Below are positions 1 to 42,054 of a stretch of 64,000 bases of DNA, in pieces. This stretch comes from Ascidiella aspersa (Eukaryota). The stretch's first letter is position 1; the number at the start of each line of letters is the position of its first letter. Location: contig OZ004613.1 in assembly GCA_963924565.1 (NCBI GenBank), positions 11,222,001 through 11,286,000 on the forward strand, read 5' to 3'. The notes beneath the pieces were generated by a model. It did no database searches. It was not told the DNA's origin and saw nothing but the letters and a program-made list of their open reading frames with translations. A program made the position numbers and the translations under genes.

Positions 1-610
1 AAAATAATTTCACTGTTTGATTTATAAGTTGTCTATAAGTTAACCAGGAACCGTTTCAGAAACAGTACACCAAAATTAATTAATGAAAAATATGCGTTTT
101 TCTGCTACAGTAATAAAAATTAGTTTTAAAAATAACTCCCACATAGTCATAATCGCATTTGTTAATGTTTAACACATTTATGTGTTGCACAAATATAAAT
201 TGTCGTGGGAAATTGAAAACAATAACGAAAACAAAATAATAATAAACTTATTTGTTCTGGAAAATTAGGTTTGAATAAATCTCATGTTCAATGAATCTAT
301 TAACTGTGATTTTTGTCAAGCATACTGTTCACATAAATCATTTTTGCGAAATATGCTTTTGAATTTATGACTTGTGGATAACGAAGTATGAATGCGGCTG
401 AAGTGATTTGTTTTCATTTCACTTACTTTTGCTGGGCGAACTGACTTAAACTTTCTCGATCGACCCAGCAGGAAAATAAAGACATATAAGCTCTTTTTTC
501 TAACTCATACAAAACTCTTTTTTCTCCCAGCGCAAGCCCTATCGGATGTTGCTATGAACAGCTGGCTACTGAGATACACAAGGAAAAACAAATATTTTCC
601 TGTTTAACGC

Positions 611-618
611 TATATAAG
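611..618 (+). promoter_or_regulatory. TATA box of peptide gene copy 1 (conserved in all four copies)
   Basis: TATATAAG upstream of a short non-coding exon ending at donor 670; same motif at 30253, 41059 and 54069. Confidence 0.7.
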
Positions 619-763
619 TGGCCCGTCAGCATCAGATAATCAGCGCATCCATCTCAAACCAACGTTTGAGTGAACAGCGCTCAAAGTGTTAAAATTATAA
701 ATTGTTCAGCGTTATGCCAAACAATTTTGTAATATTTGAATTGTTTTAGATTATTCAGGAACC

Positions 764-1603
764 ATGAATAAGCTAACTGTTTTCGCTCTTCTTTTTGCTG
801 TTCTTTTGTTGGCTGATGTCGACGCCTGGGGTCGTCGTCGTCGTCGTCGTCGCCGCCGTCGCCGTCATCTTGTGAGAAGAATCATCCGTATTGGTTGCAG
901 CTTGAACAAATATTGCAGAACTGGGCGCACAATTTACAGAATCGGACGCAGAATTTTCCGTGCGTTCGGGTGAGTAAAATAATTATATTTTGTAAGAGTT
1001 TGTTTAGAGTTGTTAATGTGAAACCCAAGTAAGTTTGTGTGGCTTAAAGTTAGAATAAAAACAAACAAATATGTTTTGTAAATAATTTTGAATAGTCCTG
1101 ACATATAACCTAGCTAAGCAAGGACGTTTTGTCAATTTGTTTACAGAGTGAGAAATTGTTTACATTTATTATATTTTACAACTATTTTCTTTGAATTTGC
1201 AGTGATGAAGAAATGCAGCAAGAACAAGAAATGTTAGGTTGGTCCAAACACTGTTTATATTGTAGTTTTATGTTACCTTGTAGTTTTGAATGAAATATTA
1301 AGATCAATTTTCTTTGTACATTGAGGACACGAATCAAATGAGCTACTGAGTTAGTTTCAACAATAGTTTACTAAATCTTTTTAATGAACCGTTTTTATTT
1401 CTAAATTTATTATAAGTTTGAAGAGTGAGTAAAGATTTGGCAATATTTTAATGTATTTTGAGGCTTTGTTTCAACATAAAAGAAATAAGACAACATATTT
1501 ATTTTACACAGACACAGCTGATTTCGTAGAGGAAGAACCTGTTGACTTCGTAGAGGAAGACATTGTGGATGAACCCGAAATGGAAGAAGTTGTCCAGGAA
1601 TAA
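764..1603 (+). CDS. Putative antimicrobial peptide precursor, copy 1 (CDS exons 764-969, 1203-1237, 1512-1603; 110 aa)
   Basis: GT-AG splicing joins the 69-aa ORF to DEEMQQEQEMLDTADFVEEEPVDFVEEDIVDEPEMEEVVQE*. Signal peptide MNKLTVFALLFAVLLLADVDA, cationic core WG-R11-HLVRRIIRIGCSLNKYCRTGRTIYRIGRRIFRAFG, acidic tail. Likely UTR introns 670-749 and 1611-1816; AATAAA at 1878-1883. Confidence 0.85.
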
Positions 1604-3408
1604 ATTCAACGTAAACACCTATAGTTTGTTATCTTATTTTTTATTATAAAACAAGTTGTATTTACGTCTGGTGATTTTTCTGCTTTGTAAACAATCAGTT
1701 AAACATATAACAAATAAATTCCTTTATAATGATGCTAAAGAACAGTACAACGTTACTGGAGAAACGCCAGTAATTTTAATCATACACATTTAATTGTTTT
1801 GTTTTTTATATTTTAGATGGAACCGAAAAACGACAAGATCTCAATGGAATTGTTTTTATTTGGCTTTAAAAACTACAAATAAACTGCATTTAAAATCATC
1901 AGTGCTGTTATATGATACTATATTGTAGCCCCAATATTTATAGTAAAAGGCCTATTTAAGACATTAGAATTACCGCAAAAATATCCTCGTGAGTTGTAAC
2001 ACAGAAGGGCAGAAATTACTTGTTCTAAATATTGCGACTCTTCAGAAAGAAGCAATATAAGCAATATTGTAAATTAAACACTAATTTGGTCAAGTTATTA
2101 AGAAAACTTTCTATTGAGATAAAAAAAAAGATTTAAATCCGAGAAACAAATAATACACGTATAAAATGTATTAACAGTTATACACTGATAATAATTAATT
2201 AAAATTCGCTCAATTTATCAAATTACCATAGTGTTATAAACATTTTTTACCAAAAAATGAAGTACTTTAGAAAACAAATATTTTAACACTTAATTTCAAA
2301 GGAATGAACATAGCTAATATTCCTGTTAATAAAATGCAGACCTGTGTCAACAAAATCTTTTTTAAGTAGAAAATAGTTTTTTTTCTAAAATTTTACTTAA
2401 ATTATAGCACTTTCAAAAAAGAATTCCACTAAAATTATAAAAATAACTAGTTTCAGAGTTTAAATAAAACAACAACTTTTGTGTTTATTATGAATCTCGT
2501 ATTTCAATCACAAAATTAAGGCGAAATAAAAAAACAATTCATCGAAATTTGTTTAACGAAGTAGATATATTAATAACAATATTATTATTTGTCATGAAGC
2601 AAAACAGTCTTTAAAGTGATATGGGTGTCTTCACATTTCACAAATCCCTGAATCTCTTATAATAACTGGCAAAGTTTGTCCGCAGGTTGCCGATTTATTA
2701 TCTCCGGCATATTTTCGCCTGTCGGTCGCCGGCATGTCGTCTTAGAGAGACAGATAGAGCAACGTCGCTCACAATGCTCCTTCCTAAGTGAGAAGCGAGG
2801 AGATGGGTAAATTAGAAAGTAAGCCATGTGCTAACAGATAGAAAAATATTAGGCTCTATTTATAAGAAAAAAGCCAGATCAATAAAGAGGAGTTCAGTAA
2901 AGTTTTAAGGATGCGTATATGTTGAACAACATCTGGATCATGCCGTCTCCAATCTCGGGAAGATGAGATTTGCCTCAACAGGAACATCTTGGTTATGAAG
3001 TGCTAAGACTCTGCCCTTCCTAAAGCCATAAACACATATTTGCAATTCACTTAGTGGAAGATGAATGTTTGCAAAACACGATGATATTGCGGCTTTTGAG
3101 CTAATTGGGTTTGATTGTTGCCAAAGCAGGATGTGTGCGACATTGTTGAGGCGAAATCGTGTAGTTTTAGCTGACGCCAAACAAGTGATTTAGCTTTAAA
3201 CAAATATATCAGATGGTTAAATATAATAATAATTATTTGAATTTCTTACTCTTAAAAGATAAATTTTTATGAAGCCGAGTATGTCTTTGTGCATTCCAAA
3301 CCAATTTTATTTTCCGTCTTCACTGTTGACCATTGTATTTGATAGAAACAACATGGTAATTGTTTTAATCACAGTTACACAAACATAAAAACAAACTCAA
3401 CAAGTATT

Positions 3409-4030
3409 AGTAGTCTTTAACTTGCGCGAAGTGTGCCGTGTCCCCAGGTGTGCCCAGGTGTGCGGAAGTGTATTCCGGCGTATTCAGGTTACATCCGGTG
3501 AGCAAAAGTAAAATTGAAAAGTGTTCAAAAGTGTGCAAAAGTACCCTGAGGAGCAAAAAAGCGTCTTTGGGTGAAAAAAAACGTTTTTATAAGTTTCCGG
3601 AAGTGAAGGTGGAAGTGTCAAAAAGTGACAAAAAGTGTGATACGGTAAGGTAAGGTAGTTCTCTACGTTGCAGTGTTTTTGTTAGGCCCAAAATATTTTT
3701 TGTAAAATTTTCAGAAGAGTCAGAAAGCTACTTTTGCGCGAGGTGTGCCAATTTCAAAAAGTGACCTTTGCACGAAGTGTGCCAAAAATATCGTCGATTG
3801 GTAAAGTCGAACTGTACATTGGTTGTCTTGTTTGTTGTGGCAGATTTGGGCTCGTTCACAGAGAAGCGAGCAGAGAGGAAACAGTGTTTCCCTATCAAGA
3901 CTGGTTTCCTAATTATAGCCAGTATTGGTTTACTATTGACGTAAAGAGTATGAGATGGTATTTTATATTTAGTTCTTTAAAACTTTAGTTGTTTGGTAAT
4001 TTAACTTGAAGATGACGGATTTTATTATTG
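3409..4030 (+). repeat. Left terminal inverted repeat (~620 bp)
   Basis: Reverse complement of 19878-20493, with roughly 20 differences by manual comparison. Confidence 0.95.
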
Positions 4031-10527: not shown

Positions 10528-13500
10528 TTAAATATCTAATGGGCTTGAGTTTATACCATCAGAATGAATTTTTCGTTTAGGATAAAAATAATTCAAGCCT
10601 TGTCGAAATTGTTGATAGCTATATATCTTTTGATTTACGTAACGAAATCCACGATTTTCTCCACAAACATTTATTTTTTCTGATAGAACCTTAAAATAAT
10701 CGTCAATGCAATATTTGTTTTGCTTCTTAATCAATCCTTTTGATGTTTGTTTAGTTTTTTCACCATGGCAAAAGTATGTTTTTGAGTTCAGAGCTACAAT
10801 GGCTTTGCCAGAATACTCTACTTTAAACAAACCAGGGGTCCGACTTTCATGTTTAAAATGTGTAAGACAGCATGCACGAGAAGCATTAAAGGGGAGATTA
10901 GCAGTTTTGGTAGCGACAAATTCATTAAAATGCAATGGGCAAGCAATAGAAGGAAACCATGTGTCATATTCACCATAAAATTCTGCACGTTTTTCAGGAA
11001 TAATTACATTATCCAAATTTTTGTCAGAAAGTGCAAAATATAATGAATCAGTGTCCATTTGAACAAGTTCAAAGTTTTGCGGCGAAATATATTTGTTAAG
11101 ACAATCATAGTAAAACCTTAGCATACGAAGTTTAGCGAGCTGTAAAATCATTGAACCTATCTGTATAGGAACATTGTGTACGATTGAACGTTTTCTACTG
11201 TGTACTTCATACACGTTGTCACTCAATTGTGTAGCATTGCGAAAATGTTTGGAGTTCATAGCTTTGGTGGTTTTTTCCTCACTTAAAAAAGTAACATTTT
11301 CCTGTTTTTCTTTATTAAGCAATGTCCTTCCGTATGCAGAGTTACCCTGAAAAAACAAATTAAAGATTTTCATTAATATTAGTAGTAATTTCCCTTATAG
11401 TATTGAGTTACAAATCTATTTAACAAAAAAAAAAAAAAAAAAAAAACAAAAAAAACTAAGTAATATCAAACAACTAATACTTTTTTGAGGTTTTACCTGT
11501 AATTTCCATAAATCTGCTAATATTTGGGAGTCTGGATGAAGATCACCTTTCCGTCGCTCAGTCGTTACTTTATCACAAAATGTTTTGAAACATTGTTTGG
11601 GTTCATAGAGTATAACTTTGTGAACAAATGTGACCACCAATCCATTTGTCATATACCATGCAAGAAGAGGGGAAGCTAAGAGGATTTTATCACCCTTATA
11701 ACTGCTTATAAGATATCGAGTGGGATAGGATAATAGATCATTATCAATTGCATATTGCTTCATGTTATCTCCAATATCATCACGTGAAATGGCTGCATTC
11801 TTAAAAATTGGGGGGAACTCTTTAAATTTATCTCTTAGACCAGGTGGGACAAAAATATCCACCAAAGCAAAACCAAACAACTCTCCATTTTGGAACCCAC
11901 GAAGAATATTTTCTTGTGTGAGTGGTTTTGGGGGCTGAAGTGATGTCAATAGATAGTGTGACACAAATCTGATGGCAAGTGGATCAGTCTTACATTGAAA
12001 AGCCCAAGTACATTCACGCATTTCAATAAGAGTATAACCAAAACTTCGAATATAGGCTGCAATATCTTTGTCTTTTTCCCTAACTTTTTCAAAGTCACGA
12101 TCCTTAAAGGTTTTCGTGATATTACATTTAGGACAGCAATGAAAAAAGCAACCCAAAAACGAAAGTACAATTTTTTGATCTGCTATATACCCATCTACTT
12201 TAATATTACGAGAACCAATTTGCTTTTCTCCACCATTAAATTGATGTTGAATGTATGATATATCATTTTGCATTGCATAAAATGTCATCCACTGTAAAGC
12301 AAGATATCCAGTTGTTTGTGACCTTTCAAATTTAAACTTATCATTTTCTTTTCGCTCGAGAAGAATGTAATTTCCAGTTGGCATATCACCCATTAAAGCT
12401 GACAAATAAAGGGAATTTGCATCATACCCTATAACACTTTGACATGTTTTTGCAGTAGCACCATAGACATCTCCCCGTATAACAGATTCCCCTGCTGCAT
12501 GCCAACGTGTAAAAACAATTGATGGACCTCCAACAATTTGGTCGCGAAACAATTTATTAATGTGAGCATGCTTGTTTGGAAACAAAGAGAAATAGATATC
12601 TGGTGGAACAAATTGAAACATAAGTCGTTGTGATAAACCAGGGGTTGACACCCCATCACACAAAAAATTGATGTTCAGTGAGTGATAGATTGAAATTAAC
12701 TTAATAACAACCTGTTTAAGTGGTTCAACGTCATGTAGATTGTAAGCAATAAGATAATCCCTAAAAGTTTTCATACCTTGAGTTTTCCATAACTTACAGC
12801 ATTCATCGTAGTCATCTTCTGAAATAGTTTCTTTTGTGAGACTGCTTCGAAATGCCTCTCTTGGTGGAAGACACCTGTCTTGTAATTTATCTAAATTGTC
12901 AACATATTCGTAAGGAAAAAAAAGTTTTTGCTGTTCAGTGTTAAATGCAAGAAGCAAACTTCGAAGATTATATCCTGGTGATATAAAGTTACATAGATCT
13001 AAGAAACGAAATTTGGCTGTTTGAAGGCAAAGATAGGAATTCTGTTTCTTAATGCAAAAAAGAATCGGATCAAATTGTTGCAATAGTGGAATTAGCCATT
13101 TTAAACATAATGGAATGTCGTATCTTGATCCATTAAATGTTAACACTGGTATTGCCTTTATAAAAGCTGAAAATTTTGCTTTTAATTTAACCAAAGGGTG
13201 GTTTTTCATTTTGAAATCAGGTTCGTTAGATTTGGCTTCATCAATCTTGCAATTTAATTCGTCAAGTACATGACTATATTTGTCGAGCATCAAATTTTCA
13301 GATTTATTTTGAATTGCAAAAAAATAATGCAACATATTGCAAATTAATTGGTGAGAGTTTCCATTTGAAATTAGACACACAGGTTTATCAAAACCTGGAA
13401 CATTTGATGTTATTGCAACACTTAAAAGTTGGTGACATTGTGTAAAAGTTGTTTTTCCTGTGTTTGTTGGAAGACTGCTGACATTTTTTGGAAAGAAAGC

Positions 13501-14578
13501 CTCAAAATCAAAAATAATGAAAAATGGATGATATTGCAATTGTTTGGCAATTAAAATTCCATTTTGCTCTAGCTCAAGGTATATATTAGGGTTAACTCGA
13601 AATATTTTTCCAGGAAAGGTTTGTTTGACACCGATTTCACATGATGATTCATGTTTTAGAACAAGATAAGGTTTTTTGAACATGTTGTTGCAAAATTGAC
13701 ATGCAAAGTTATGGGTGATGCTTTCAATAGATTGAACAAAACAAAAGTGATTCTCATATTGTACTACATCAAAAGATATAAAATTTGCATTTGATTTGGG
13801 AACATAAGATCTACGTTTTACTTTCCAAATAATTTCTTCGTTAACTTTTTCGACTGAGAACACAGTAATTCGAACTTTGAAAAACTGTTCAATATTTGAA
13901 ATTTCATTAAAAGATACACCTGGAAATGAGTCTACATTTTGTTCAGGATAGTACTGAGAGAAGTATTCTAATGTTTTTTTTTCAAGATTAGCATCATCAC
14001 ACTTTAAACCTTTTGCCAAACATCTAAAAAGACAGAGGTTGTCATTAATCTGTTTCCTAGAGTGGTTTCTTGTAAAACCAAGGATACCTCTACGCTTCAA
14101 GAAAGAGGGTAAACAAATAACAGAACAACCGATTAAGGGAAACTCCTTTAGACGATAGGTAAAAAAAGTAACATTTGTGAGTTCTGTTAAATACCACTTT
14201 GTATCTTCACGGTGCAATGAAAGTTTAGCTAAAACATCACTATTTAGAACTGACTGCAATATATTTTTGAGATCTTCAAAACAACGAACAACAGGTGGCA
14301 TCAAATAGAAAGTAAAATTGTTTGGGGATGCATGGAAATACTGGTTCACAAGTGACATTGTGTTACTCATAACAAAACCAAAACTTGTATTTATCTTGAA
14401 GCTGGATGGAGACATACCTTCTAGAATATCTTTTGTGATATCGTCAATAGATTTTTCAAGTGGTAATTGGTAGTTGAAAATTGACATCATGGTATTCAGT
14501 GATGTAGAAGTAGAAATACTATCCCAATGTTGTTGAACAATATCGGATCTGTTTTCTGGACATATAGGATTTGTAATT
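10528..14578 (-). CDS. polB: Protein-primed family B DNA polymerase, core exons 14578-11497 and 11346-10528
   Basis: Exo motifs FDFE, FNGSRYD, YNLHDV; Pol A YDANSLY; Pol B KLQ|GNSAYG joined across a 150-bp phase-0 GT-AG intron (11347-11496); Pol C MDTDSL; OTU-like DNLCLFRCL...HFCF; Vsr-like insert. Confidence 0.95.
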
Positions 14579-14666
14579 CTAAAAAAAAAAAAAAAAAATT
14601 GAATAGTTATTTTTTCTTACAAAAAATTACATTTCTTAATGAAATAAATAATATAGTGATAATCAC

Positions 14667-14943
14667 CTTTTCGATCTCTTTCTCTTTGGTGGCAAGTCAC
14701 AAAATTTAGACGTAGAAGTTTCATCTTTGTCATTTGTATCCATTGGTGTATAGTTTGAACTGTGTGCCACTTCAGTTGGAATTGAACTACAAAATAGAAT
14801 TATGTTAATTGAAAGGTACTATTTAATATAAATCATTTATCACCTAGACTTACGTTTGATTCTTCTTTGGTATTGTTGAGAAAAGTATATCACTATCTTC
14901 AGAAAATCTGTTTCGAACACTAAAACAAAACATATTTTTTAGA

Positions 14944-14977
<34 letters not shown>

Positions 14978-17425
14978 ATATTAAAGATTAATTAATATTG
15001 GTTTACCTAGTATCCAACAGTTTACGTTTTCTGTTTAACAATTTTATTCTTTGGTCACGACTCCGTCTAGGAATTCTGAATTCAAAAACAAATAAAAAAA
15101 AAACATTAAAATAGAATAGTGTAAGTGTAAACAATAAAAAATGACATATACTAACATTTTTTGAAGTTTTCTTGGTCTTTGAGTTACTTCATCAGGAACG
15201 TTTAATTTTTTTTTCAACCCTTGGCCTTTCTGAGGAGAGTTAAAATCAGAACTGTCACTGCTAATCATTCGATTCGAATTCCTAAAAACATATTATTAGG
15301 TAAAAAAAAAATCATGATGTGTGACTTACATAAAAAAATTGCTTACTTTTTTTATGAAAAGGTTTTAAAAGTTTTTGAAAATCGCTCGAACTATCTGATG
15401 AGTCTGAATCTAAAATTTGATTACGTTTTTTGCTTGATATATTTTTTCTGTTGTCATCATTGTATTTGGAAATTCTAAATTCAGAGACACATAAAAAGAC
15501 ATCAAAATAGAATAATGTAAGAGTTTACAATAAAAAATGCATATATACACTGAAAAAAAAAAACAAAAAAACTAACTTTTTCTTGTGAAAAGGTATTGCT
15601 GTATGTTTTTGAAAATCAATTGTGCTATCTGATGAATTTGAATCTATAATTTGATTACGTTTTCTTTTGTCATCACTTCGTTTAGAAATTCTAAATACAG
15701 AGACAAATAAAAAAAAACAACAAAAAAAACAAAAAAACATTTAAATAGAATAATGTTTCGATAACTAAAAATAAAAAACGATAAGCTTACAGTTTTTTAG
15801 GTTTTGTTGGTTTTTCAATTTTATCCTGAACGATTAAATTTTCTTTCAACCCTTGGCCTTTTTGAGGAGATAAATCAGAGATGTTCATAGTTTCCTTAGA
15901 ACAAAACCTTTTTCTCCGTTGTTCACAAGCTTTATCACTGTGCTGTCTTTTTCGGTACGCAGATGAAAAGCTATCATGAAAAAAAAAATCAATTTTAATT
16001 TGAGTTGTGAATAATTAAACCCAAAATAAAATTAATAATATATAAGAATACAAAATTGTCTTACCAGTAATTACAAAGTTTACACTGAAGCTTTGGGTGG
16101 TTTGAAATATGATGTTTCTGTAACATGGCTTTGCTCTCAAAATAACTTTTACAAAGTCTACATTTATTTTGATTTGTTTTGTCAATAATGAGATGAGTTT
16201 TGTCTTTGACTTTATCTGAAACATAAAAGCAAACAACTTTTTAACAGTTAAATCACAAATATCTCATTTAAATATGTATGTTTATAAATATTCAAAAGCA
16301 AAGCTATAAAATCAATAGAACTATCCTAAATATAAACACCTGCAGGTATATTTTTCTTTTCTACATTTTTGGTTTTAAGTTCAGGTTTACTTTCCTTCTC
16401 TGCATTATTGGTTCCAATTTTAACTGAAATACAAAGCAAGAAAAACTCATAATAGATTAGTCACTAAGCCATTAAGTACATAAACACACCTGCAAAATCC
16501 AAAACTTGATCAATATTGTCTGGAAGTTCAACTTGGTCAGTGAGATCTATGATGAGAGGCATCTGTTTAGGTATAGTCTCCTTCTTTATATTTTTTGTTA
16601 CAAGTTTAGATATACTCTCCTTTTCCACATTTTTCGTTTCAGGTTTAGTTTCCTTCTCTGCATTATTGGTTCCAATTTTAACTGAAATACAAAGCAAGAA
16701 AAACTCATAATAGATTAGTCACTAAGTCATTACGTACATAAACACACCTGCAAAATCCAAAACTTGATCAATATTGTCTGGAAGTTCAACTTGGTCAGTG
16801 AGATCTATGATGAGAGGCATCTGTTTAGGTATAGTCTCCTTCTTTATATTTTTTGTTACAAGTTTAGATATACTCTCCTTCTCCACATTTTTCGTTTCAG
16901 GTTTAGTTTCCTTCTCTGCATTATTGGTTCCAATTTTAACTGAAATACAAAGCAAGAAAAACTCATAATAGATTAGTCACTAAGCCATTAAGTACATAAA
17001 CACACCTGCAAAATCCAAAACTTGATCAATATTGTCTGGAAGTTCAACTTGGTCAGTGAGATCTATGATGAGAGGCATCTGTTTAGGTATAGTCTCCTTC
17101 TTAATATTTTTTGTTACAAGTTTAGATATACTCTCCTTCTCCACATTTTTCGTTTCAGGTTTAGTTTCCTTCTCTGCATTATTGGTTCCAATTTTAACTG
17201 AAATACAAAGCAAGAAAAACTCATAATAGATTAGTCACTAAGCCATTACGTACATAAACACACCTGCAAAATCCAAAACTTGATCAATATTTTTAGGAAC
17301 TTTATCTTGCTTAGTAAAATCCAAAAGTGATAATGGTTTAGGGTCATAAAAGATTTCATTTTCCTGTGGTAATTGCTTTTCTGGAGTTTCTGATGGACAA
17401 TAAATTTTAGTTTTTTTTTTTTCAC
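14667..17425 (-). CDS. Spliced N-terminal extension of polB (exons 17425-17264, 17197-17006, 16939-16748, 16681-16490, 16423-16340, 16215-16065, 15970-15791, 15690-15577, 15474-15347, 15281-15156, 15075-15007, 14919-14854, 14786-14667)
   Basis: Every exon is open and bounded by pyrimidine-rich AG and by GT; introns are 65-124 bp. Phases match at all junctions but one (15347, an A-run one base short). A zinc finger is reconstituted across intron 15971-16064. Confidence 0.8.
16381..17290. repeat. 258-bp tandem repeat, ~3.5 units (192-bp exon + 66-bp intron)
   Basis: Near-identical units; ORF track hits at 16464, 16722 and 16980 are spaced 258 bp apart. Confidence 0.95.
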
Positions 17426-17707
17426 CTAAAAAATACCGGTTACAAAACTAACCACAAATTTCCACCAAAAAGGGTTTATTCATTTCCTCAATAAACCATG
17501 ATTGATGTACAAGATAGTCAGCTAAAAAACAAATACATAAATGTAAGAATCCTATCACAACGCATATAATTTAGCTTAGCATTCGGTAAGTGATTTTCCC
17601 TCACACCATATCACCTAACGTAATCTCTGAAAACTTCACACTATTCAGAAACAAACAAAAAACAAATACTTCTATTATATTTCAAATACAAATAAATAAA
17701 TAAATAC

Positions 17708-18100
17708 CGTTGTTTTGCAGTGACAAATCATCTTGTAAGCCTAAAATATATATTATAATATAACTAAATCTTGTTTCAAAAAAAAAAAAAGTCTAGATCT
17801 GGGCAGTAATCTTCACACTGTTTAAGTTTATTTTTTATCTGAGATTTAAATTACTTTATTATAACATATATTATAATATAACTAAATCTTGTTTCAAAAA
17901 AAAAAAAGTCTAGATCTCGGCAGTAATCTTCACACTGTTTAAGTTCATTTTTTATCTGAGATTTAAATTACTTTATTATATTCAATATTATAATTTCATT
18001 ATTTTACTAGCAAATAACAGATCAATAAAGCAAACAAAATATGAATACTAATTTAAAAATAAAAATACATCTCTATTAACGTACCTTGCTCACAATTCAT
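17708..18100 (-). CDS. Tentative first two coding exons of polB (18100-18085, 17740-17708; MNCEQG LQDDLSLQNN G)
   Basis: ATG at 18100; AAG|GTAC donor; the phase-1 mini-exon is compatible with exon 17425. Other candidate mini-exons at 17640 and 17521 make this end uncertain. Confidence 0.45.
17747..17981. repeat. ~118-bp direct repeat, 2 copies, within the putative first intron
   Basis: ATATATTATAATATAACTAAATCTTG...TTACTTTATTATA occurs twice in tandem. Confidence 0.85.
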
Positions 18101-19877: not shown

Positions 19878-20493
19878 CAATAATAAAATCCATCATCTTC
19901 AAGTTAAATTACCAAACAACTAAAGTTTTAATGAACTAAATATAAAATACCATCTCATTGCTCTTTACGTCAATAGTAAACCAATACTGGCTATAATTAG
20001 GAAACCAGTCTTGATAGGGAAACACTGTTTCCTCTCTGCTCTGTGAACGAGCCCAAATCAGCCACAACAAACAAGACAACCAATGCACAGTTCGACTTTA
20101 CCAATCGACGATATTTTTGGCACACTTCGTGCAAAGGTCACTTTTTGAAATTGGCACACCTCGCGCAAAAGTAGATTTCTGACTCTTCTGAAAATTTTAC
20201 AAAAAATCTTTTGGGCCTAACAGAAACATTGCAACGTAGAGAACTAGCTTACCTTACCGTATCACACATTTTGTCACTTTTTGTCACTTCCACCTTCACT
20301 TCCGGAAACTTATAAAAACGTTTTTTTTCACCCAAAGACGCTTTTTTGCTCCTCAGGGTACTTTTGCACACTTTCGAACACTTTTCAATTTTACTTTTGC
20401 TAACCGGATGTAACCTGAATACGCCGGAATACACTTCCGTACACCTGGGCACACCTGGGCACACGGCACACTTCGCGCAAGGAAAACACTACT
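19878..20493 (-). repeat. Right terminal inverted repeat (~616 bp)
   Basis: Reverse complement of 3409-4030. Confidence 0.95.
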
Positions 20494-21220
20494 AGTATTA
20501 TCATTAAAGATGTTTATGTGAATAGCCATACATAACGAATTACTAATAATCACCCAAATGAACTAGACAGGGTGTGCGGTTTTTGTATATTTTACCAGGA
20601 GGTACATGGCGGATGTACTACATCATATCAGGGGGTATAGTGCAGTTCCGCTATATTTTACCAGGGGGTATTCTCTAGTAATTCTATATTCTTTCAACGG
20701 GCCTAATTTGTCAGTGTCCATATTCTCCCAATGTTGTGTCATACGTTTCTGTGCTTTATCAGGTAAAAGCTGATGTGGCCCGAAGTTTCGTGTCATTAGT
20801 TGGGCATGGTGCACTCAACATTGATTGCCAGTGTTGTTAATAAAAATTTGGCTGCGAAGCAAACCTATAACTTGTCTTTATAATTAAAAAACATTTGACA
20901 TTTTTTTCTTGCACCCCTATACGCCTCTAATTGGGGACAAAAGTCAATAGTGTGATGTATTCGATTTAGTTCTTTACAGCTATCTACTCCAATCTAGCGG
21001 CAGAAAATCTTCAATACAGTATTCGGTCCAATCGCTTGCTTTATTCTGGCCGCGAATCGGCTGGCTCCCTGCTGTGCAACCTTCATTGTGCGAAGTGTCT
21101 CATCTTAGTAAAACTAAGCGCGTGCGACTTGCCTTTTAGAAAGAGGCTTTTCTTCGAAAATTATATGGGCCGAAAATTTATTTTCGGGACATATCTTGTT
21201 TTTGCCGCTATTCTTTTTTG

Positions 21221-22060: not shown

Positions 22061-22208
22061 NNNNNNNNNNNNNNNNNNNNNNNNNNNNNNNNNNNNNNNN
22101 NNNNNNNNNNNNNNNNNNNNNNNNNNNNNNNNNNNNNNNNNNNNNNNNNNNNNNNNNNNNNNNNNNNNNNNNNNNNNNNNNNNNNNNNNNNNNNNNNNNN
22201 NNNNNNNN
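22061..22208. other. Assembly gap (148 N)
   Basis: Run of N; its flanks match those of the AT-rich tract at ~23812-23947. Confidence 0.99.
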
Positions 22209-28400: not shown

Positions 28401-30405
28401 GAAACCAACAATCTATAGCTTACTATATTAAGAGAAATCAACAACAAATATACAGTTACCAAAATCGTGGTTATTTAAATTTTCAAAATGTAATTGGCCG
28501 CAGCGTTATCATGGTACAAAATATTTACAATGATTATTTGCCTTCATTGAAAAATATCTAAGATTGTCTTTTATAACTGAAGACATTTTTACATATTACT
28601 GTCGCAACACCAAACATTATTACCGAGGTTGGTCAAAACACTGTCGAGATTATTCGAAGCAAAGGCAGCATACAACCCTGTTCTTAATCGTTTGGTCTCG
28701 CGAGATTAATACTCTTATCCCTCAAATACTCTTATGCGTCCCATACCATGCTGCAGCGTGAACGACAGTCTATTTTTGTGTCCTCGATTAAAATAATGAT
28801 CTATTTCGAGGCGGTAATTTTATTATAAATTAGAAGACAATGGTTTTGTCACCCTAATCAGTTTTAAAATAAGACCTACAAGGCAACAATCTTCAGCAGA
28901 AGAATCTATAATATTTAGTATTAAGACTAACGACATAATAAATCCAAATACACAATAATGGTAGGGATTGGAAGTTGGTTAGGGTTAAAATTATTAGGAG
29001 GGTTAGTAGTGTAGGCTACTTAGCGGTGGGGTTTAGTAAATGTTTGTATAGTCGCTTTGCAATATGTTGCGGGGTCTTTACAATAACTCTTAGTTCTCAA
29101 CAGCAATATTGCATGCGTCAAGATGCGGCGATCTGTTCATAGCTATGCAGAAAGGAAGACAGATCACACTCCACAACAAAATCTTCCTGTCGCAGAAGCT
29201 AAAAAAACCTACACGATTTACTAAGAAGTGGTATCGTGATTTACTCATTGCATTCGCATCATAAGAAAACGTATCAATATACTTTGTGGAAAACATCTTG
29301 TTTCGCCAGAGGATCGCTCGCCTGCTGTATCCTGCAAACACAGATTGATGAACTCAGCGTACTATGTCCTCTTAATAGTGTGATACACTATGCGAACCCA
29401 CAGAATAATTATTAAATAGTTTTTTTTACTGTAAACATCAAGAGTAAACGTTTTAGAAAAATAGTCACCGGAAAATATAGATTTTAAATTTGGAATGCAA
29501 AGTATCGTAGGCTTAATACAGCCTAAAAGTTCTAAGATAAACAAATAGTTGTAATTTATTTGGAAAAATCTTGATTTGTTTGCATTGAATAATCGTGTCG
29601 GTATTAAAATATTCACAATTCCAACGGGAACGTCACAAAATAATTCCATTGTTTGATTTATAAGTTGTCTATAAGTTAACCAGGGACCGTTTCAGAAACA
29701 GTACACCAAAATTAATTAATGAAAAATATGCGTTTTTCTGCTACAGTAATAAAAAATAGTTTTAAAAATAGCGCAAACTCCCACATAATCATAATCGCAT
29801 TTGTTAATGTTTAACACATTTATGTGTTGCACAAATATAAATTGTCGTGGGAAATTGAAAACAATAACGAAAACAAAATAATAATTAACTTATTTGTTCT
29901 GGAAAATTAGGATTGAACAAATCTCATGTTCAATGAATCTATTAACTGTGATTTTTGTCAAGCATACTGTTCACATAAATCATTTTTGCGAAATATGCTT
30001 TTGAATTTATAACTTGTGGATAACGAAGTATGAATGCGGCTGAAGTGATTTGTTTTCATTTCACTTACTTTTGCTGGGCGAACTGACTTACACTTTCTCG
30101 ATCGACCCAGCAGGAAAATAAAGACATATAAGCCCTTTTTTCTAACTCATACAAAACTCTTTTTTCTCCCAGCGCAAGCCCTATCGGATGTTGCTATGAA
30201 CAGCTGGCTACTGAGATACACAAGGAAAAACAAATATTTTCCTGTTTAACGCTATATAAGTGGCCCATCAGCATCAGATAATCAGCGCATCCATCTCAAG
30301 CCAACGTTTGAGTGAACAGCGCTCAAAGTGTTGAAATTATAAATTGTTCAGCGTTATGCCAAACAATTTTGTAATATTTGAATTGTTTTAGATTATTCAG
30401 GAACC

Positions 30406-31245
30406 ATGAATAAGCTAACTGTTTTCGCTCTTCTTTTTGCTGTTCTTTTGTTGGCTGATGTCGACGCCTGGGGTCGTCGTCGTCGTCGTCGTCGCCGCCG
30501 TCGCCGTCATCTTGTGAGAAGAATCGTCCGTATTGGTTGCAGCTTGAACAAATATTGCAGAACTGGGCGCACAATTTACAGAATCGGACGCAGAATTTTC
30601 CGTGTGTTCGGGTGAGTAAAATAATTATATTTTGTAAGAGTTTGTTTAGAGTTGTTAATGTGAAACCCAAGTAAGTTTGTGTGGCCTAAAGTTAGAATAA
30701 AAACAAACAAATATGTTTTGTAAATAATTTTGAATAGTCCTGACATATAACCTAACTAAGCAAGGACGTTTTGTCAATTTGTTTAAAGAGTGAGAAATTG
30801 TTTACATTTATTATATTTTACAACTATTTTCTTTGAATTTGCAGTGATGAAGAAATGCAGCAAGAACAAGAAATGTTAGGTTGGTCCAAACACTGTTTAT
30901 ATTGTAGTTTTACGTTACCTTGTAGTTTTGAATGAAATATTAGGATCAATTTTCTTTGTACATTGAGGACACGAATCAAATGAGCTACTAAGTTAGTTTC
31001 AACAATAGTTTACTAAATCTTTTTAATGAACCGTTTTTATTTCTAAATTTAGTAAAAGTTTGAAGAGTGAGTAAAGATTTGGCAATATTTTAATGTATTT
31101 TGAGGCTTTGTTTCAACATAAAAGAAATAAGACAACATATTTATTTTACACAGACACAGCTGACTTCGTAGAGGAAGAACCTGTTGACTTCGTAGAGGAA
31201 GACATTGTGGATGAACCCGAAATGGAAGAAGTTGTCCAGGAATAA
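30406..31245 (+). CDS. Putative antimicrobial peptide precursor, copy 2 (exons 30406-30611, 30845-30879, 31154-31245)
   Basis: Same exon structure as copy 1; I>V and A>V in the mature region. Confidence 0.85.
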
Positions 31246-34200
31246 ATACAACGTAAACACCTATAGTTTGTTATCTTATTTTTTTATTATAAAACAAGTT
31301 GTACTTACGTCTGGTGATTTTTCTGTTTTGTAAACAATCAGTTAAACATATAACAAATAAATTCCTTTATAATGATGCTAAAGAACAGTACAACGTTACT
31401 GGAGAAACGCCAGTAATTTTAATCATACACATTTAATTGTTTTGTTTTTTTATTTTAGATGGAACCGAAAAACGACAAGATCTCAATGGAATTGTTTTTA
31501 TTTGGCTTTAAAAACTACAAATAAACTGCATTTAAAATCATCAGTGCTGTTGTATGATACTATATTGTAGTCCCAATATTTATAGTAAAAGGCCTATTTA
31601 AGACATTAGAATTACCGCAAAAATATCCTCGTGAGTTGTAACACAGAAGGGCAGAAATTACTTGTTCTAAATATTGCGACTCTTCAGAAAGAAGCAATAT
31701 AAGCAATATTGTAAATTAAACACTAATTTGGTCAAGTTATTAAGAAAACTTTCTATTGAGATAAAAAAAAAGATTTAAATCCGAGAAACAAATAATACAC
31801 GTATAAAATGTATTAACAGTTATACACTGATAATAAGTAATTAAAATTCGCTCAATTGATCAAATTACCATAGTGTTATAAACATTTTTACCAATAAAAT
31901 AAAGCACTTTAGAAAACAAATATTTTAACACTTAATTTCAAAAGAATGAACATAGCTAATATTCCTGTTAATAAAATGCAGACCTTTGTCAACAAAATCT
32001 TTTTTAAGTAGAAAATAGTTTTTTTTTTTAAATTTTACTTAAATTATAGCACTTTCAAAAAAGAATTCCACTAAAATTATAAAAATAACTAGTTTCAGAG
32101 TTTAAATAAAACAACAACTTTTGTGTTTATTATGAATCTCGTATTTCAATCACAAAATTAAGGCGAAATAAAAAAACAATTCATCAAAATATGTTTAACG
32201 AGGTAGATATATTAATAACAATATTATTATTTGTCATGAAGCAAAACAGTCTTTACAGTGATATAGGTGTCTTCACATTTCACAAATCCCTGAATCTCTT
32301 ATAATAACTGGCAAAGTTTGTCCGCAGGTTGCCGATTTATTGTCTCCGGCATATGTTCGCCTGTCGGTCGCCGGCATGTCGTCTTAGAGAGACAGATAGA
32401 GCAACGTCGCTCACAATGCTCCTTCCTAAGTGAGAAGCGAGGAGATGGGTGAATTAGAAAGTAAGCCATGTGCTACCAGATAGAAAAATATTAGGCTCTT
32501 TTTATAAGAAAAAGCCAGATCAATAAAGAGGAGTTCAGTAAAGTTTTAAGGATGCGTATATGTTGACCAACATCTGGATCATGCCGTCTCCAATCTCGGG
32601 AAGATAAGATTTGCCTCAACAGGAACATCTTGGTTATGAAGTGCTAAGACTCTGCCCGTCCTAAAGCGATAAACACTTATTCGCAATTTCAATTAGAGGA
32701 AGATGAATGTTTGCAAAGCACGATAATCCATTCTACAGCGATGGACATATTGCGGCTTTTGAGCTAATTGGGTATTATTGTTGCCAAATCAGGATGTGTG
32801 CGACATTGTTAAAGCGGAATCGTGTAGTTTTAGCTGACGCCAAACAAGTGATTTAGCTTTAAACAAATATATCAGCCGGATATATATAATAATAATTATT
32901 TGAATTTGCGACTCTGAAAAGTTAAATTTTTATGAAGCCTAGTATGTCTTTGTGCATTCCAAACGAATTTTATTTTCCGTCTTTACTGCTGACCATTGTA
33001 TTTGATAGAAACAGTATTGTAATTGTTTTAATCATAGTTACACAAACACAAAAACAAACTTAACAAGTATTATCAATAAAGATGTAAATGTGAATAGCCA
33101 TACATAATGAATTACTAATAATCAACACAAATGAATTAAAGACTCGGAAATACCTATCTATCTAGAAAAGAAAACTTTGCACGAGGCCGTTAGTAATTTA
33201 TTTCGCTGTTTGTGCGATGCTATTTTCGCCTTTAGTTTTTTGGAATCATGGTTGGTGCCGGGTCGATATTAATTTTGTTTTCGCCTTCGCACGAACGAAT
33301 TTCCGTTATCGTTTGAAATAAATTTTGACCCATTTTTAATAGCCAAAACTTCATTGAACCGCACCTTACCAATAGTTGTTGCATTTAAGTGTTTGACAAG
33401 TAAAACGTTTGAGCAACGAAAATGTCATTTAAATTTGTTACGGCCCTACGAGATCTTTTAAGTTTGGCTTTGGTCCGCTATTCGAAAAAGTTTGCCAAAC
33501 GCCTGTTGTACTGCAAGCATTATAAGTCAATTGCAATATGCTGCGGGTTTTGCCAGGCTAAACACTTCTTGTGAGTTAGGGGTGACGATGTGTTCAATTC
33601 TTATAACAGGAAAATACAAGATATACTCCAGAACAAAGTGTTTCCTTTTTGCCGATTGAAAAGCTCTGCCGAGATTGGAGAAGACTCACGGTATTCTCCA
33701 TTGTATTCACATCCAAACCAAACTTGAAAAGTTTGTTTTAAAGAATTTTTTAATGACAAAACCACTAATCTAAATAACTTGTTATTAACAGATTAAACAA
33801 CAACAAACATACGGTTACCAAAATCGTGGTTATTTAGGTTTTCAAAATATAGTTGGCCGCAGTGTTATTAAGGTACGAAATATTTGCCTCCATTGACAAA
33901 TAATAAAGATTTTATTTTCTATAAAGATAAGGAATTTCGCAACACCAAACAACACTCTTATGCGTCCCATCGCTTGGTGCAGTTTCAGCGATAGCCTAAA
34001 CTTTGCAGCTATGATCAAAACAAAATCTTAGTTTAATGAGATCATTTTGTTACAAATTATAATACGAAAGTCTTATCGTCATAATCAGTTTTAAAGGTCG
34101 TCTTCATATTATATTCTCAGCTTACCATTGCTGTAATCAAAGCCGGGAACACATAAAAAGACCTAAGGCAAAAAAGCAGAATAATTTATAATACCATAGT

Positions 34201-40200: not shown

Positions 40201-41211
40201 TACGAACCCACAGAATAAATTATTAAATAGTTTTTTTTACTGTAAACATCAAGAGTAAACGTTTTAGAAAAATAGTCACCGGAAAATATAGATTTTAAAT
40301 TTGGAATGCAAAGTATCGTAGGCTTAATACAGCCTAAAAGTTCTAAGATAAACAAATAGTTAAAAAAAAAAAAATCTTGATTTGTTTGCATTGAATAATC
40401 GTGTCGGTATTAAAATATTTACAATTCCAACGGGAACGTCACAAAATAATTCCATTGTTTGATTTATAAGTTGTCTATAAGTTAACCAGGGACCGTTTCA
40501 GAAACAGTACACCAAAATTAATTAATGAAAAATATGCGTTTTTCTGCTACAGTAATAAAAAATAGTTTTAAAAATAGCGCAAACTCCCACATAATCATAA
40601 TCGCATTTGTTAATGTTTAACACATTTATGTGTTGCACAAATATAAATTGTCGTGGGAAATTGAAAACAATAACGAAAACAAAATAATAATTAACTTATT
40701 TGTTCTGGAAAATTAGGATTGAACAAATCTCATGTTCAATGAATCTATTAACTGTGATTTTTGTCAAACATACTGTTCACATAAATCATTTTTGCGAAAT
40801 AGGCTTTTGAATTTATAACTTGTGGATAACGAAGTATGAATGCGGCTGAAGTGATTTGTTTTCATTTCACTTACTTTTGCTGGGCGAACTGACTTACACT
40901 TTCTCGATCGACCCAGCAGGAAAATAAAGACATATAAGCCCTTTTTTCTAACTCATACAAAACTCTTTTTTCTCCCAGCGCAAGCCCTATCGGATGTTGC
41001 TATGAACAGCTGGCTACTGAGATACACAAGGAAAAACAAATATTTTCCTGTTTAACGCTATATAAGTGGCCCATCAGCATCAGATAATCAGCGCATCCAT
41101 CTCAAGCCAACGTTTGAGTGAACAGCGCTCAAAGTGTTGAAATTATAAATTGTTCAGCGTTATGCCAAACAATTTTGTAATATTTGAATTGTTTTAGATT
41201 ATTCAGGAACC

Positions 41212-41278
41212 ATGAATAAGCTAACTGTTTTCGCTCTTCTTTTTGCTGTTCTTTTGTTGGCTGATGTCGACGCCTGGG

Positions 41279-41317
<39 letters not shown>

Positions 41318-42054
41318 ATCTTGTGAGAAGAATCGTCCGTATTGGTTGCAGCTTGAACAAATATTGCAGAACTGGGCGCACAATTTACAGAATCGGACGC
41401 AGAATTTTCCGTGCGTTCGGGTGAGTAAAATAATTATATTTTGTAAGAGTTTGTTTAGAGTTGTTAATGTGAAACCCAAGTAAGTTTGTGTGGCCTAAAG
41501 TTAGAATAAAAACAAACAAATATGTTTTGTAAATAATTTTGAATAGTCCTGACATATAACCTACCTAAGCAAGGACGTTTTGTCAATTTGTTTAAAGAGT
41601 GAGAAATTGTTTACATTTATTATATTTTACAACTATTTTCTTTGAATTTGCAGTGATGAAGAAATGCAGCAAGAACAAGAAATGTTAGGTTGGTCCAAAC
41701 ACTGTTTATATTGTAGTTTTATGTTACCTTGTAGTTTTGAATGAAATATTAGGATCAATTTTCTTTGTACATTGAGGACACGAATCAAATGAGCTACTAA
41801 GTTAGTTTCAACAATAGTTTACTAAATCTTTTTAATGAACCGTTTTTATTTCTAAATTTAGTAAAAGTTTGAAGAGTGAGTAAAGATTTGGCAATATTTT
41901 AATGTATTTTGAGGCTTTGTTTCAACATAAAAGAAATAAGACAACATATTTAATTTACACAGACACAGCTGACTTCGTAGAGGAAGAACCTGTTGACTTC
42001 GTAGAGGAAGACATTGTGGATGAACCCGAAATGGAAGAAGTTGTCCAGGAATAA
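41212..42054 (+). CDS. Putative antimicrobial peptide precursor, copy 3 (exons 41212-41420, 41654-41688, 41963-42054; 111 aa)
   Basis: Same structure; Arg tract of 12. Confidence 0.85.

Follow-up and report, generated by a model that had tools for sequence, protein, structure and literature searches.

A strongly transcribed Ascidiella aspersa gene encoding a probably secreted precursor with a poly-arginine head and a charge-matched acidic tail, one branch of a large ascidian superfamily

Styelins and clavanins, from Styela clava, and botryllin, from Botryllus, are haemocyte peptides that are made as a signal, a cationic peptide and an acidic extension. Styelins start directly with Gly-Trp, and in clavanins the Gly before the acidic part is an amide donor. 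Defensins carry an anionic propiece that is about equal and opposite in charge to the cationic peptide, and in the alpha-defensins this propiece is N-terminal; the myticalins of mussels use a dibasic cleavage site; and R8 to R12 is the length range of oligoarginines used for cell entry. The precursors of the Ciona LCAMP candidates, which include Ci-MAM and Ci-PAP, are described as having the order signal, cationic region, anionic tail, with signals that are conserved within families (one of them starting MNK), and five of the Ciona peptides are active at 3–12.5 µM (PMC7387483). The myticalins have a comparable signal/cationic/anionic build (PMC7387483; PMC5577615). Styelins and clavanins are cleaved N-terminal of an Asp (PMC7387483), a KHK-type motif has been named for styelins and botryllin, botryllin decorates extracellular nets, and furin is reported in the morula-cell granules of Botryllus (PMC9966394). 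L-hexa- to nona-arginine inhibit furin with Ki values of 42–114 nM, nona-L-arginine can be cleaved by it, and cyclic W/R peptides, with Trp beside Arg, are also furin inhibitors (PMC11394684).

The gene at 764–1603 on the forward strand of the window (the whole 64-kb stretch of DNA that was analysed) is a real, strongly transcribed small gene of A. aspersa. Its parts are the following, all on the + strand.

748–763, +: mRNA 5′ end and short 5′UTR, placed by a pile-up of read ends
764–969, +: coding part of exon 1, a 21-aa signal-like start MNKL..DVDA, then W-G-R11-HLVRRIIRIGCSLNKYCRTGRTIYRIGRRIFRAF, then a split Gly codon
764–826, +: signal-peptide-like start MNKLTVFALLFAVLLLADVDA, 21 codons, a start common to the superfamily
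827–865, +: head, Trp-Gly and 11 Arg (Arg at 833–865, codons CGT/CGC)
866–967, +: variable body of 34 aa, with Cys45 (896–898), Cys51 (914–916) and an amphipathic C-terminal 14-mer ending ..RAF
968–969, +: first two bases of the Gly codon, whose third base is 1203 (joint codon GGT, split GG/T)
970–1202, +: intron 1, GT..AG; RNA reads across the joint, depth of 0 inside
1203–1237, +: micro-exon 2 of 35 nt, acidic DEEMQQEQEML, from translation and RNA joints
1238–1511, +: intron 2, GT..AG; RNA reads across the joint
1512–1610, +: exon 3, acidic tail (D)TADFVEEEPVDFVEEDIVDEPEMEEVVQE, stop at 1601–1603, then 7 nt of 3′UTR
1611–1816, +: intron 3, in the 3′UTR, GT..AG; RNA reads across the joint
1817–1900, +: exon 4, 3′UTR, with AATAAA at 1878–1883; traced as far as 1900

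The splicing that the earlier note had predicted from the letters is borne out, since RNA reads cross both coding joints, and all three joints of the gene are of the GT..AG type. In the stranded run X6, joint 968/969>1202/1203 is crossed by 313 reads on the RNA's strand and by 1 on the opposite strand, joint 1235/1237>1510/1512 (where the codon formed is GAC, Asp) by 279 reads, and joint 1610>1817, which had not been predicted, by 180 reads; a 363-nt contig of run X1, from a separate study, contains all three joints with no differences. RNA depth at the gene reaches about 840 from about 6 in 100 of run X6. Depth rises from 2.7 in bin 655–705 to 452 in bin 757–807, and the ends of 59 molecules fall at 748 and those of 65 at 749, right at an AG preceded by a T-rich tract. 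This pile-up is either a transcription start site or, at 749/750, a trans-splice acceptor; no spliced leader was present among the loose ends listed at the 5′ end of the gene's RNA. The RNA variants at 793, 802, and 874 are all three synonymous.

Translation and residue counts agree with the layout that had been read from the window earlier: the 21-aa signal-like start is followed by a 48-aa cationic part with 21 Lys/Arg and no Asp/Glu, which includes the R11 tract, a C-x5-C formed by Cys45 and Cys51 of the body and an amphipathic end, and by a 41-aa tail with 20 Asp/Glu (5 + 1 + 14) and no Lys/Arg. The three coding pieces are not a product of chance, because they recur at 30406–31245, 41212–42054, and 54218–55072. 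The charges of the two parts almost cancel (+21 against −20), but the acidic propiece lies C-terminal here and N-terminal in the alpha-defensins, to which there is no sequence relation. The boundary between them reads ..RAF-G and then DEE.., with no dibasic flanks, unlike the dibasic site of the myticalins, to which there is likewise no sequence relation. The run of 11 Arg falls inside the length range used for cell entry, and it also forms a chain of overlapping R-X-K/R-R convertase motifs; the body of the precursor holds RR pairs as well. The last 14 residues of the body, RTIYRIGRRIFRAF, have a hydrophobic moment of 0.75, a value that only 0.9% of 5000 shuffled versions of the 34-aa body attain.

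The start looks like a signal peptide by sequence rule, which was used here rather than predictor software: it begins with MNK, has a hydrophobic core of 14 residues and places Val at −3 and Ala at −1, with an unusual +11 flank. That flank puts +11 within 15 residues after the hydrophobic core, and by the well-established positive-inside rule such an arrangement might produce a reverse signal-anchor or a failed translocation, in which case the Arg-rich part would reside in the cytosol or nucleus, for example as a nucleic-acid binder. Non-secretion of this kind appears very improbable, given that a 14-residue core is short for an anchor, that the residues at −1 (Ala) and −3 (Val) suit a cleavage site, that two conserved acidic residues part the core from the Arg run in nearly all members of the superfamily, and that many small precursors that have paired Cys and an acidic tail use the same signal exon. 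A strong positive stretch right behind a hydrophobic segment can nevertheless disturb translocation, and to that extent it speaks against a secreted defense peptide.

The earlier note had placed the precursor in the ascidian type with signal, cationic part, Gly, and acidic tail, and this assignment holds, the order of parts matching the description in PMC7387483. In Ciona, the boundary is likewise marked by acidic residues and has no dibasic site (KH.S908.1, ..AALG then DEGE; KH.C7.94, ..RRRFGD), the candidates are likewise often Arg-rich (KH.L63.9 has R8 and R9 runs), and, by eye, the ..AEMEEVMQ.. of the Ci-MAM-D/E tails is comparable to the end of the window tail, ..PEMEEVVQE (PMC7387483, Table 1). 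On the other hand, the Arg run of the window peptide comes after a conserved Trp, right where cleavage of the signal is predicted; its body has a conserved C-x5-C, whereas the Ciona screen threw out Cys-containing sequences (PMC7387483); the database searches detected no body or tail homology with Ciona; and the Ciona peptides were assayed, whereas this one is a candidate. In our literature search, a natural secreted marine peptide with at least eight consecutive Arg was found only in PMC7387483 among the papers compared. An antimicrobial reading of this build is favored by those Ciona peptides that are active in print and weakened by KH.L63.9, which in spite of its R8 and R9 runs has no or weak activity against E. 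coli (PMC7387483), a result that also counts against a defense role for the window peptide. The styelins, clavanins, and botryllin are set apart from it by their descriptions rather than by alignment: a poly-Arg head is unreported for those described, and RRRR does not occur in the accessible portion of PMC9966394. Synthetic cell-penetrating oligoarginines resemble the head in composition, and the head also has a Trp near its Arg like the furin-inhibiting cyclic W/R peptides (PMC11394684); in contrast to them, the window peptide is natural, genome-encoded behind a signal peptide, fused to an amphipathic body with a putative disulfide loop, and made with its own acidic counter-ion tail.

The gene is one branch of a superfamily with at least 61 loci in this genome, counted as exon-1-like loci with signal, Trp and Arg-run head (E ≤ 0.001). 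Four copies lie in the window and nine in the tandem array to which it belongs (C7, 11.22–11.33 Mb); the other three in the window are as follows.

30406–31245, +: copy 2, exon 1 changes I41V and A67V; unit 29637–33072 is 96.7% identical to 1–3409
41212–42054, +: copy 3, R12 for R11, I41V; unit 40443–43877 is 96.5% identical to 1–3409
54218–55072, +: copy 4, W-S-R11 head, exon-1 peptide 91% identical; unit 53646–55982 is about 92% identical

Both Cys are invariant in seven of seven array copies. Arg runs are 9–12 residues long in the array, 9–13 in the C7 and C3 genes together and 4–13 in the whole family. The C3 cluster has the same three-exon build, with a cationic part ending in FG and then an acidic tail whose first residue is Asp. 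Splice models of paralogues were used only where they reproduced the RNA-proven pattern of the window gene (the other four full-length C7 copies, L002, L003, L004, and L007, and three C3 genes); automatic enumeration over 16 paralogues was noisy and found no model for L006, L011, L013, and L019. Across at least seven clusters of this genome the bodies are unalignable, and nothing in the mature region but the head stays constant; in some relatives (L021 and L038 of this genome, P0014 and P0020 of the databases) the Arg run is the sole cationic part. A pure CGT microsatellite was considered as the origin of the run and rejected, as other clusters use CGA/CGC or AGA/AGG/CGA mixes. The genome also contains copper monooxygenase genes of the PAM/DBH type and P-domain convertase genes.

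Among the array copies, the head is kept at the amino-acid level with varied codons, the body outpaces the introns, and the signal and tail are nearly static. The signal has 0/63 changed bases in five of the seven array paralogues and 0–1/63 in six of seven, and exon 3 differs at 1–2 of 92 bases in the five full-length paralogues (the shorter tails of L006 and L008 differ at 2/68 and 13/65 aligned bases, respectively). Head pN/pS is 0–0.15 in the five comparisons that show change, synonymous Arg-codon changes among them, and there is no head change at all relative to L002. In the body, pN/pS is at least 1 in five of six comparisons (L006, 1.45; L007, 1.53; the most distant copy, L008, 0.86), and all nine changes in the three closest copies are non-synonymous; these are small counts, and a body value above 1 could also stem from relaxed constraint or from gene conversion in the flanking parts. 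Changed bases are more frequent in the body than in the introns for L007 (21/96 against 58/711, Fisher p=1.4e-4) and L006 (26/105 against 104/681, Fisher p=0.023). Tandem copies, heavy transcription, and a fast body between a conserved signal and tail make up the pattern expected of defense effectors. A neuropeptide was rejected as the main reading in view of the unconserved body, the tandem multiplication and a C-terminal boundary without dibasic flanks.

The database search of the precursor that had been proposed was run with exon pieces, and no named family was matched. Pfam gave only sub-threshold noise for the exon-1 and exon-3 peptides and three paralogues; its Conotoxin match (E=0.01) covers residues 4–52 of L009, that is, the signal, Arg run and start of the body. 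The word-index protein search, run with exon 1 only (exons 2 and 3, with 11 and 29 codons, fall below its length bound), gave two candidates, none of which scored; as the query was only part of the protein, this negative outcome carries little weight. An exon-1 profile, in contrast, found 25 proteins with the same layout among 1.84 billion, from Ciona, Styela, Clavelina, a brachiopod, an anemone, and a sponge. The best of these matches align only to profile positions 1–42 up to 1–66, and none of the 20 that were looked up carries a peptide-family name, the labels, where there are any, being "uncharacterized," "hypothetical," glue-protein-like, lipase, and At3g49140. Two Ciona matches (P0004, E=2.5e-6; P0014, E=3.1e-4) have signals of the form MNKLLL..L.D/E..(E/S)(S/A), which by eye are like the MNKSALLxLLxxGLxVLxExxxA of a "novel LCAMP family" in Ciona (PMC7387483), and two from Styela clava (P0013 and P0021) have a W-G-R5-6 stretch and then a body with a K(R/K)HK-type motif (KRHK/KRNRK) that resembles the KHK motif of styelins and botryllin (PMC9966394). 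The proposal of a new family therefore stands only in part: no named family was matched by the Pfam, word and profile searches, but the gene is a branch of the superfamily rather than a stand-alone family. Same-layout relatives from Ciona, Styela, and Clavelina are already deposited as uncharacterized proteins, and part of the Ciona members have been screened in print (PMC7387483). By sequence the gene is a new sub-branch, and a variant, of the signal/cationic/anionic-tail kind that is known from ascidians. In the relatives the charges match only roughly, which weighs somewhat against the defense reading: in 14 small precursor-like proteins hand-picked from the 25 (the 11 left out being the TSP1, lipase, and mucin-like matches, the long or 5′-extended gene models, and some short matches), net charge runs from −13 to +8, and the Spearman correlation of 0.60 is moderate.

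Our preferred but still tentative reading is that the gene encodes the secreted precursor of a cationic host-defense-type peptide of ascidian build; among the readings considered here, a defense peptide of the known sea-squirt build is the most likely. The signal would be removed after ..DVDA, and while the precursor is made and stored the acidic tail would neutralize its cationic part. Cleavage would then fall between Gly and Asp, as reported for styelins and clavanins, with the Gly leaving a C-terminal amide, and the product would keep the W-G-R11 head and have about 47 residues and one small disulfide loop. Even at the salt level of seawater, the arginine head could bind polyanions (microbial surfaces, nucleic acids, or sulfated matrix); the amphipathic helix at the C-terminal end could attack membranes.

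Whether the head stays on the mature peptide bears directly on this scheme. It is conceivable, though rather unlikely, that the Arg run is a removable N-terminal spacer, with furin-type convertases cutting within it or behind it and carboxypeptidases trimming it, giving a mature H35..F68-amide; the active part would then be the 34-residue body with its disulfide loop, and the head might serve sorting, charge balance, or the timing of activation. The overlapping R-X-R-R sites of the run and the P-domain convertase genes of the genome would suit such processing, as would the W-G-R5-6 that precedes a styelin/botryllin-like motif in P0013 and P0021, given the Gly-Trp start of styelins. So would the furin of ascidian morula-cell granules (PMC9966394), by which the head might be cut off, a point against the defense reading with a retained head, and the cleavage of nona-L-arginine by furin (PMC11394684). 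However, four Arg would do for cleavage, yet 9–13 are kept with a pN/pS of 0–0.15; the RR pairs inside the body would be cut too; and long L-polyarginines do not behave as simple substrates of furin but inhibit it at nanomolar levels (PMC11394684). Because runs of 9–13 far exceed the need of a convertase and because relatives exist in which the run is the only cationic part, the run itself is probably part of the product, as the defense-peptide reading has it.

The profile matches also show the signal, Trp, and Arg-run head on unrelated cargo. In the sponge Sycon it precedes a class-3 lipase (P0025), in Ciona a glue/mucin-like protein (P0012), and in an anemone an EF-hand protein (P0009), and TSP1-domain proteins (P0018 and P0023) carry it too. 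Such cargo speaks against a purely antimicrobial head. This recurrence, together with the head being the one constant over unalignable bodies and with the presence of botryllin on extracellular nets (PMC9966394), would fit a general polyanion anchor or condensation tag on a protein that is not primarily a microbicide, although we consider this doubtful. The +21 beside −20 would make a self-neutralizing polyampholyte that condenses in granules, and after release the cargo might stick to sulfated tunic or mucus matrix, extracellular nets, or surfaces and serve there in adhesion, in clotting, or as matrix. However, rapid non-synonymous change in the body, along with tandem copies, is typical of effectors facing changing targets and not of matrix proteins, and the body has a strong predicted amphipathic helix. 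Moreover, the E-values of the non-ascidian matches are modest (3.7e-6 to 9.8e-4 against 1.84 billion proteins) and were obtained on biased sequence with a profile that demands a Trp in the head, so these matches may be convergent.

More broadly, it is an improbable but attractive idea that the head (acidic signal end, Trp, and 8–13 Arg) is a selected natural poly-arginine tag, placed at the mature N-terminus of many unrelated secreted marine-invertebrate cargoes. The cargo would be defense-peptide bodies in ascidians and, elsewhere, a lipase and proteins of the TSP1, mucin-like, and EF-hand kinds; at the ionic strength of seawater, the tag might keep it bound to polyanionic targets or take it into cells, and where the cargo is small the acidic tail might act as a removable counter-ion. 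If true, the synthetic R8–R12 cell-penetrating and furin-inhibiting peptides would have here their first counterpart encoded in a genome. If the mature peptide of A. aspersa keeps its head, it would be a natural, abundantly expressed W-G-R11 peptide, and would give a biological setting to an oligoarginine chemistry so far met mainly in synthetic cell-penetrating peptides and convertase inhibitors, as well as a test case for cationic defense peptides that work at 0.5 M salt. In terms of annotation, the superfamily takes in at least 61 small genes of this genome, and its members in other ascidians are deposited as "uncharacterized" or are mis-named. The family is also a natural experiment, with one constant head, at least seven unrelated bodies, and Arg runs of 4 to 13, that can be used for synthesis and assay.

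The gene at window positions 764–1603 (copy 1) is transcribed into a real, spliced and abundant mRNA. Its features are as follows.

764–1603, + strand: coding stretch in three pieces, by direct translation
764–969, + strand: exon 1, encoding MNKLTVFALLFAVLLLADVDA, WG, R11 and HLVRRIIRIGCSLNKYCRTGRTIYRIGRRIFRAF, plus the first two bases of a Gly codon
1203–1237, + strand: exon 2, completing the Gly codon and then encoding DEEMQQEQEML
1512–1603, + strand: exon 3, whose joint codon is Asp, followed by TADFVEEEPVDFVEEDIVDEPEMEEVVQE and the stop codon
1611–1816, + strand: intron 3, in the 3′UTR, beginning 7 nt past the stop codon (X6 reads and an X1 contig)

Four public runs were compared with window 400–1900. 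In the stranded RNA run X6, of which ∼6 in 100 was read, depth rises to ∼840 in exon 1 and falls to 0 within introns 1 and 2. The two splice joints that the earlier note had predicted are crossed by 313 and 279 X6 reads, respectively, on the RNA's strand (one further read crosses the first joint on the opposite strand), and 180 reads cross a third joint (1610>1817) that was absent from its model; all three introns are GT..AG. First mates in X6 lie almost all on the − strand, which fits a + strand RNA in the usual type of stranded library. A 363 nt contig from run X1 (from another study, labelled as another organism) spans the three joints and shows no differences. Reads of X4 span introns and flanks; this run probably derives from DNA of the sample used for the assembly and therefore supplies no independent evidence. 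Read ends cluster at 748/749, 15 nt 5′ of the ATG, where an AG follows a T-rich tract, and upstream of this position a low RNA depth persists (2.7, versus 0 in the introns); this position may be a spliced-leader (trans-splice) acceptor or a start site.

The three frequent coding variants in the RNA (at 793, 802 and 874) are each synonymous. At 793, 355 of 520 reads (68%) have A instead of T; none of the eight assembled array copies has this A, which therefore probably represents an allele in the animal that was sequenced. The I41V replacement of copies 2 and 3 occurs in 0 of 874 reads, and the transcripts thus match copy 1 or I41-type copies.

A recount agrees with the layout that had been read from the genomic sequence, a 21 aa start, a cationic part of 48 aa and an acidic tail of 41 aa. 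The cationic part contains 21 Lys/Arg and no Asp/Glu, and the tail contains 20 Asp/Glu and no Lys/Arg, so the charges nearly balance. The final 14 residues of the cationic part are predicted, on paper, to form a strongly amphipathic helix; their hydrophobic moment of 0.75 is reached in 0.9% of 5000 shuffles.

Copy 1 is one of four gene copies in the window (starting at 764, 30406, 41212 and 54218), each within a duplicated unit that is at least 3.4 kb long; the units share 92–97% identity. Whole-genome search placed the window on contig C7 in an array of nine loci (11.22–11.33 Mb) and found additional clusters on C1, C2, C3 and C6. A profile of 16 exon-1 peptides gave 61 exon-1-like loci in this genome at E ≤ 0.001, including C7:13608054, C7:20327583 and C7:20337579. 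Common to all 61 are a signal-like start with an acidic end, an aromatic residue (nearly always Trp) and 4–13 Arg, often with Gly or Ser between the aromatic residue and the Arg run. The bodies are cluster-specific (C-x5-C, W/H/K repeats, W/R repeats, Y/R repeats or Pro/Glu-rich stretches), and in many loci the last residues of exon 1 before a GT donor are ..FG or ..GE. In the C3 genes the three-exon build of copy 1 recurs, with a cationic part ending in Gly, an acidic micro-exon of 11 codons and a terminal acidic exon.

One array member, L010 (G000:C7:11317844–11317972, −), is on the opposite strand; its Arg run is interrupted (R6-V-R3) and its body is short (..ANRRGIIRLIG), with downstream acidic exon pieces kept. 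Loci L028, L030, L031, L034 and L040 (G000:C1:27.81–27.85 Mb) form a separate cluster with its own signal ..LLFIFLIVCLLLDSNG, heads of W-W-R9-12 (W-R11 in L040, W-G-R5 in L031), bodies ending ..C-(QF/RV/EF)V(P/S)N(F/W/Y)xxWR, and a long open frame on the opposite strand through the Arg run. In the window, a 624 bp stretch directly behind the gene unit (3408–4030) has an inverted copy at 19878–20494 (95.7% identity) that adjoins 10528–18100, a region labelled as a Polinton polymerase gene; 22061–22208 is 148 N.

Comparison of the array paralogues with copy 1 as reference shows that different parts of the gene change at very different rates. The signal has 0–1 changes per 63 bases in six of seven paralogues, and acidic exon 3 is similarly conserved in the five full-length ones (1–2 per 92 bases); in L006 and L008, whose tails are shorter, 2/68 and 13/65 aligned bases are changed. 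In the head (Trp, Gly or Ser, and the Arg run) there are many synonymous Arg-codon changes and almost no replacements, with pS 0.17–0.58 and pN/pS 0–0.15 in the five comparisons with any change, although this pS is inflated by slippage within the repeat and the counts are small. The Arg codons are CGT/CGC in the C7 cluster, CGA/CGC in C3 and AGA/AGG/CGA in C6 and C1; these different mixes rule out a mere DNA repeat and indicate that Arg itself is maintained. By codon usage and pN/pS, on small counts, the head is the conserved element. The body, again on small counts, changes fast: in the three closest copies nine of nine changes are replacements, and pN/pS is 1.45 in L006, 1.53 in L007 and 0.86 in L008, the most distant copy. 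Its share of changed bases exceeds that of the introns in L007 (21/96 versus 58/711, p = 1.4e-4) and L006 (26/105 versus 104/681, p = 0.023), but not in L004 (6/105 versus 60/706, p = 0.44). In each of the seven array copies compared, both Cys are kept, as is the C-terminal F-G.

No named family had been recognised for this peptide, and none emerged from Pfam, a word search of proteins with exon 1, or a HMMER search of the 16-row profile against 1.84 billion representative proteins (E ≤ 0.001). The last returned 25 proteins with the layout of copy 1 (best E = 4.4e-11). Among the 20 checked, Ciona intestinalis contributes five, C. savignyi two, Styela clava two, Clavelina lepadiformis one, the brachiopod Lingula one, the anemone Actinostola two and the sponge Sycon one, and six are unnamed metagenome or read-assembly contigs. 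The non-ascidian matches, with modest E-values, biased sequence and a profile that demands Trp, attest to the recurrence of a layout but do not prove homology. Those of the checked proteins that bear a name are called "uncharacterized", "hypothetical" or unrelated labels (P0012 "salivary glue protein Sgs-3-like", P0022 "At3g49140", and a P0025 cluster member "Lipase ZK262.3"). None of the 25 aligned with the C-x5-C body, and relatives of it were not detected outside this genome. Eight (P0001, P0002, P0003, P0004, P0008, P0013, P0015 and P0022) are small precursors whose cationic part ends ..G before Asp and an acidic tail. The Styela proteins P0013 and P0021 (XP_077967195.1 and XP_077966722.1; "uncharacterized", 160–165 aa) have a W-G-R5-6 head, a Lys/Arg-rich body with a KFYKRHK/KFYKRNRK motif and a long acidic tail; in size and motif they are reminiscent of botryllin (158 aa, KHK motif; Franchi et al. 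2023, PMC9966394).

Elsewhere the head is joined to TSP1 domains (P0023 above the cut-off and P0018 below it, both unnamed ENA contigs), a class-3 lipase (P0025, Sycon ciliatum, 104 bits), EF-hands (P0009) and a glue/mucin-like protein (P0012, Ciona); P0025, P0018, P0023 and P0012 start with a signal, Trp and Arg7-10. The Trp and Arg-run head on enzyme and TSP1 cargo is a new observation of this analysis. It bears on the reading of the head as a general anchor or condensation tag with a matrix-like role, which seems unlikely for the product of copy 1.

The same order of signal, cationic region and anionic helix is described for most candidates of a Ciona screen for linear cationic helical peptides (Ohtsuka and Inagaki 2020; PMC7387483), where a conserved signal begins MNK, Arg-rich candidates are listed and every Cys-containing sequence was excluded. 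Five of those peptides had MICs of 3–12.5 µM, and four others, including KH.L63.9 with R8 and R9 runs, had weak or no activity on E. coli. Ascidian precursors, cf. styelins and clavanins, are there said to be cut apparently N-terminal of acidic residues. Botryllin, according to Franchi et al. (2023), is kept as a propeptide inside morula-cell granules and also occurs on extracellular nets. The literature searches turned up no paper in which a secreted peptide family is defined by a conserved poly-Arg head. New here are RNA proof for the C7 array, the 3′UTR intron, and the head as conserved element.

The best full explanation, to be held tentatively at slightly under an even chance, is as follows. 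The precursor would enter the secretory path and lose its signal after DVDA; the pro-form, nearly neutral at +21/−20, could be stored safely. A cut between Gly and Asp would be followed by amidation of Phe68, and the genome encodes enzyme families that could enable this, copper monooxygenase and P-domain convertases, which lends the scheme weak support. Convertases might instead remove the head, which seems unlikely, and a protein that is not secreted at all seems very unlikely. Furin is mentioned in morula-cell granules (Franchi et al. 2023), and a furin-inhibitor review (PMC11394684) gives Ki values of 42–114 nM for L-hexa- to nona-arginine, nona-L-arginine being still cleavable. In the main explanation, a single disulfide would form a ring of seven residues flanked by two basic helices, the Arg head of the product would bind polyanions and its amphipathic tail would disturb membranes. 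In general terms, the product of copy 1 is probably a defence-type secreted peptide precursor.
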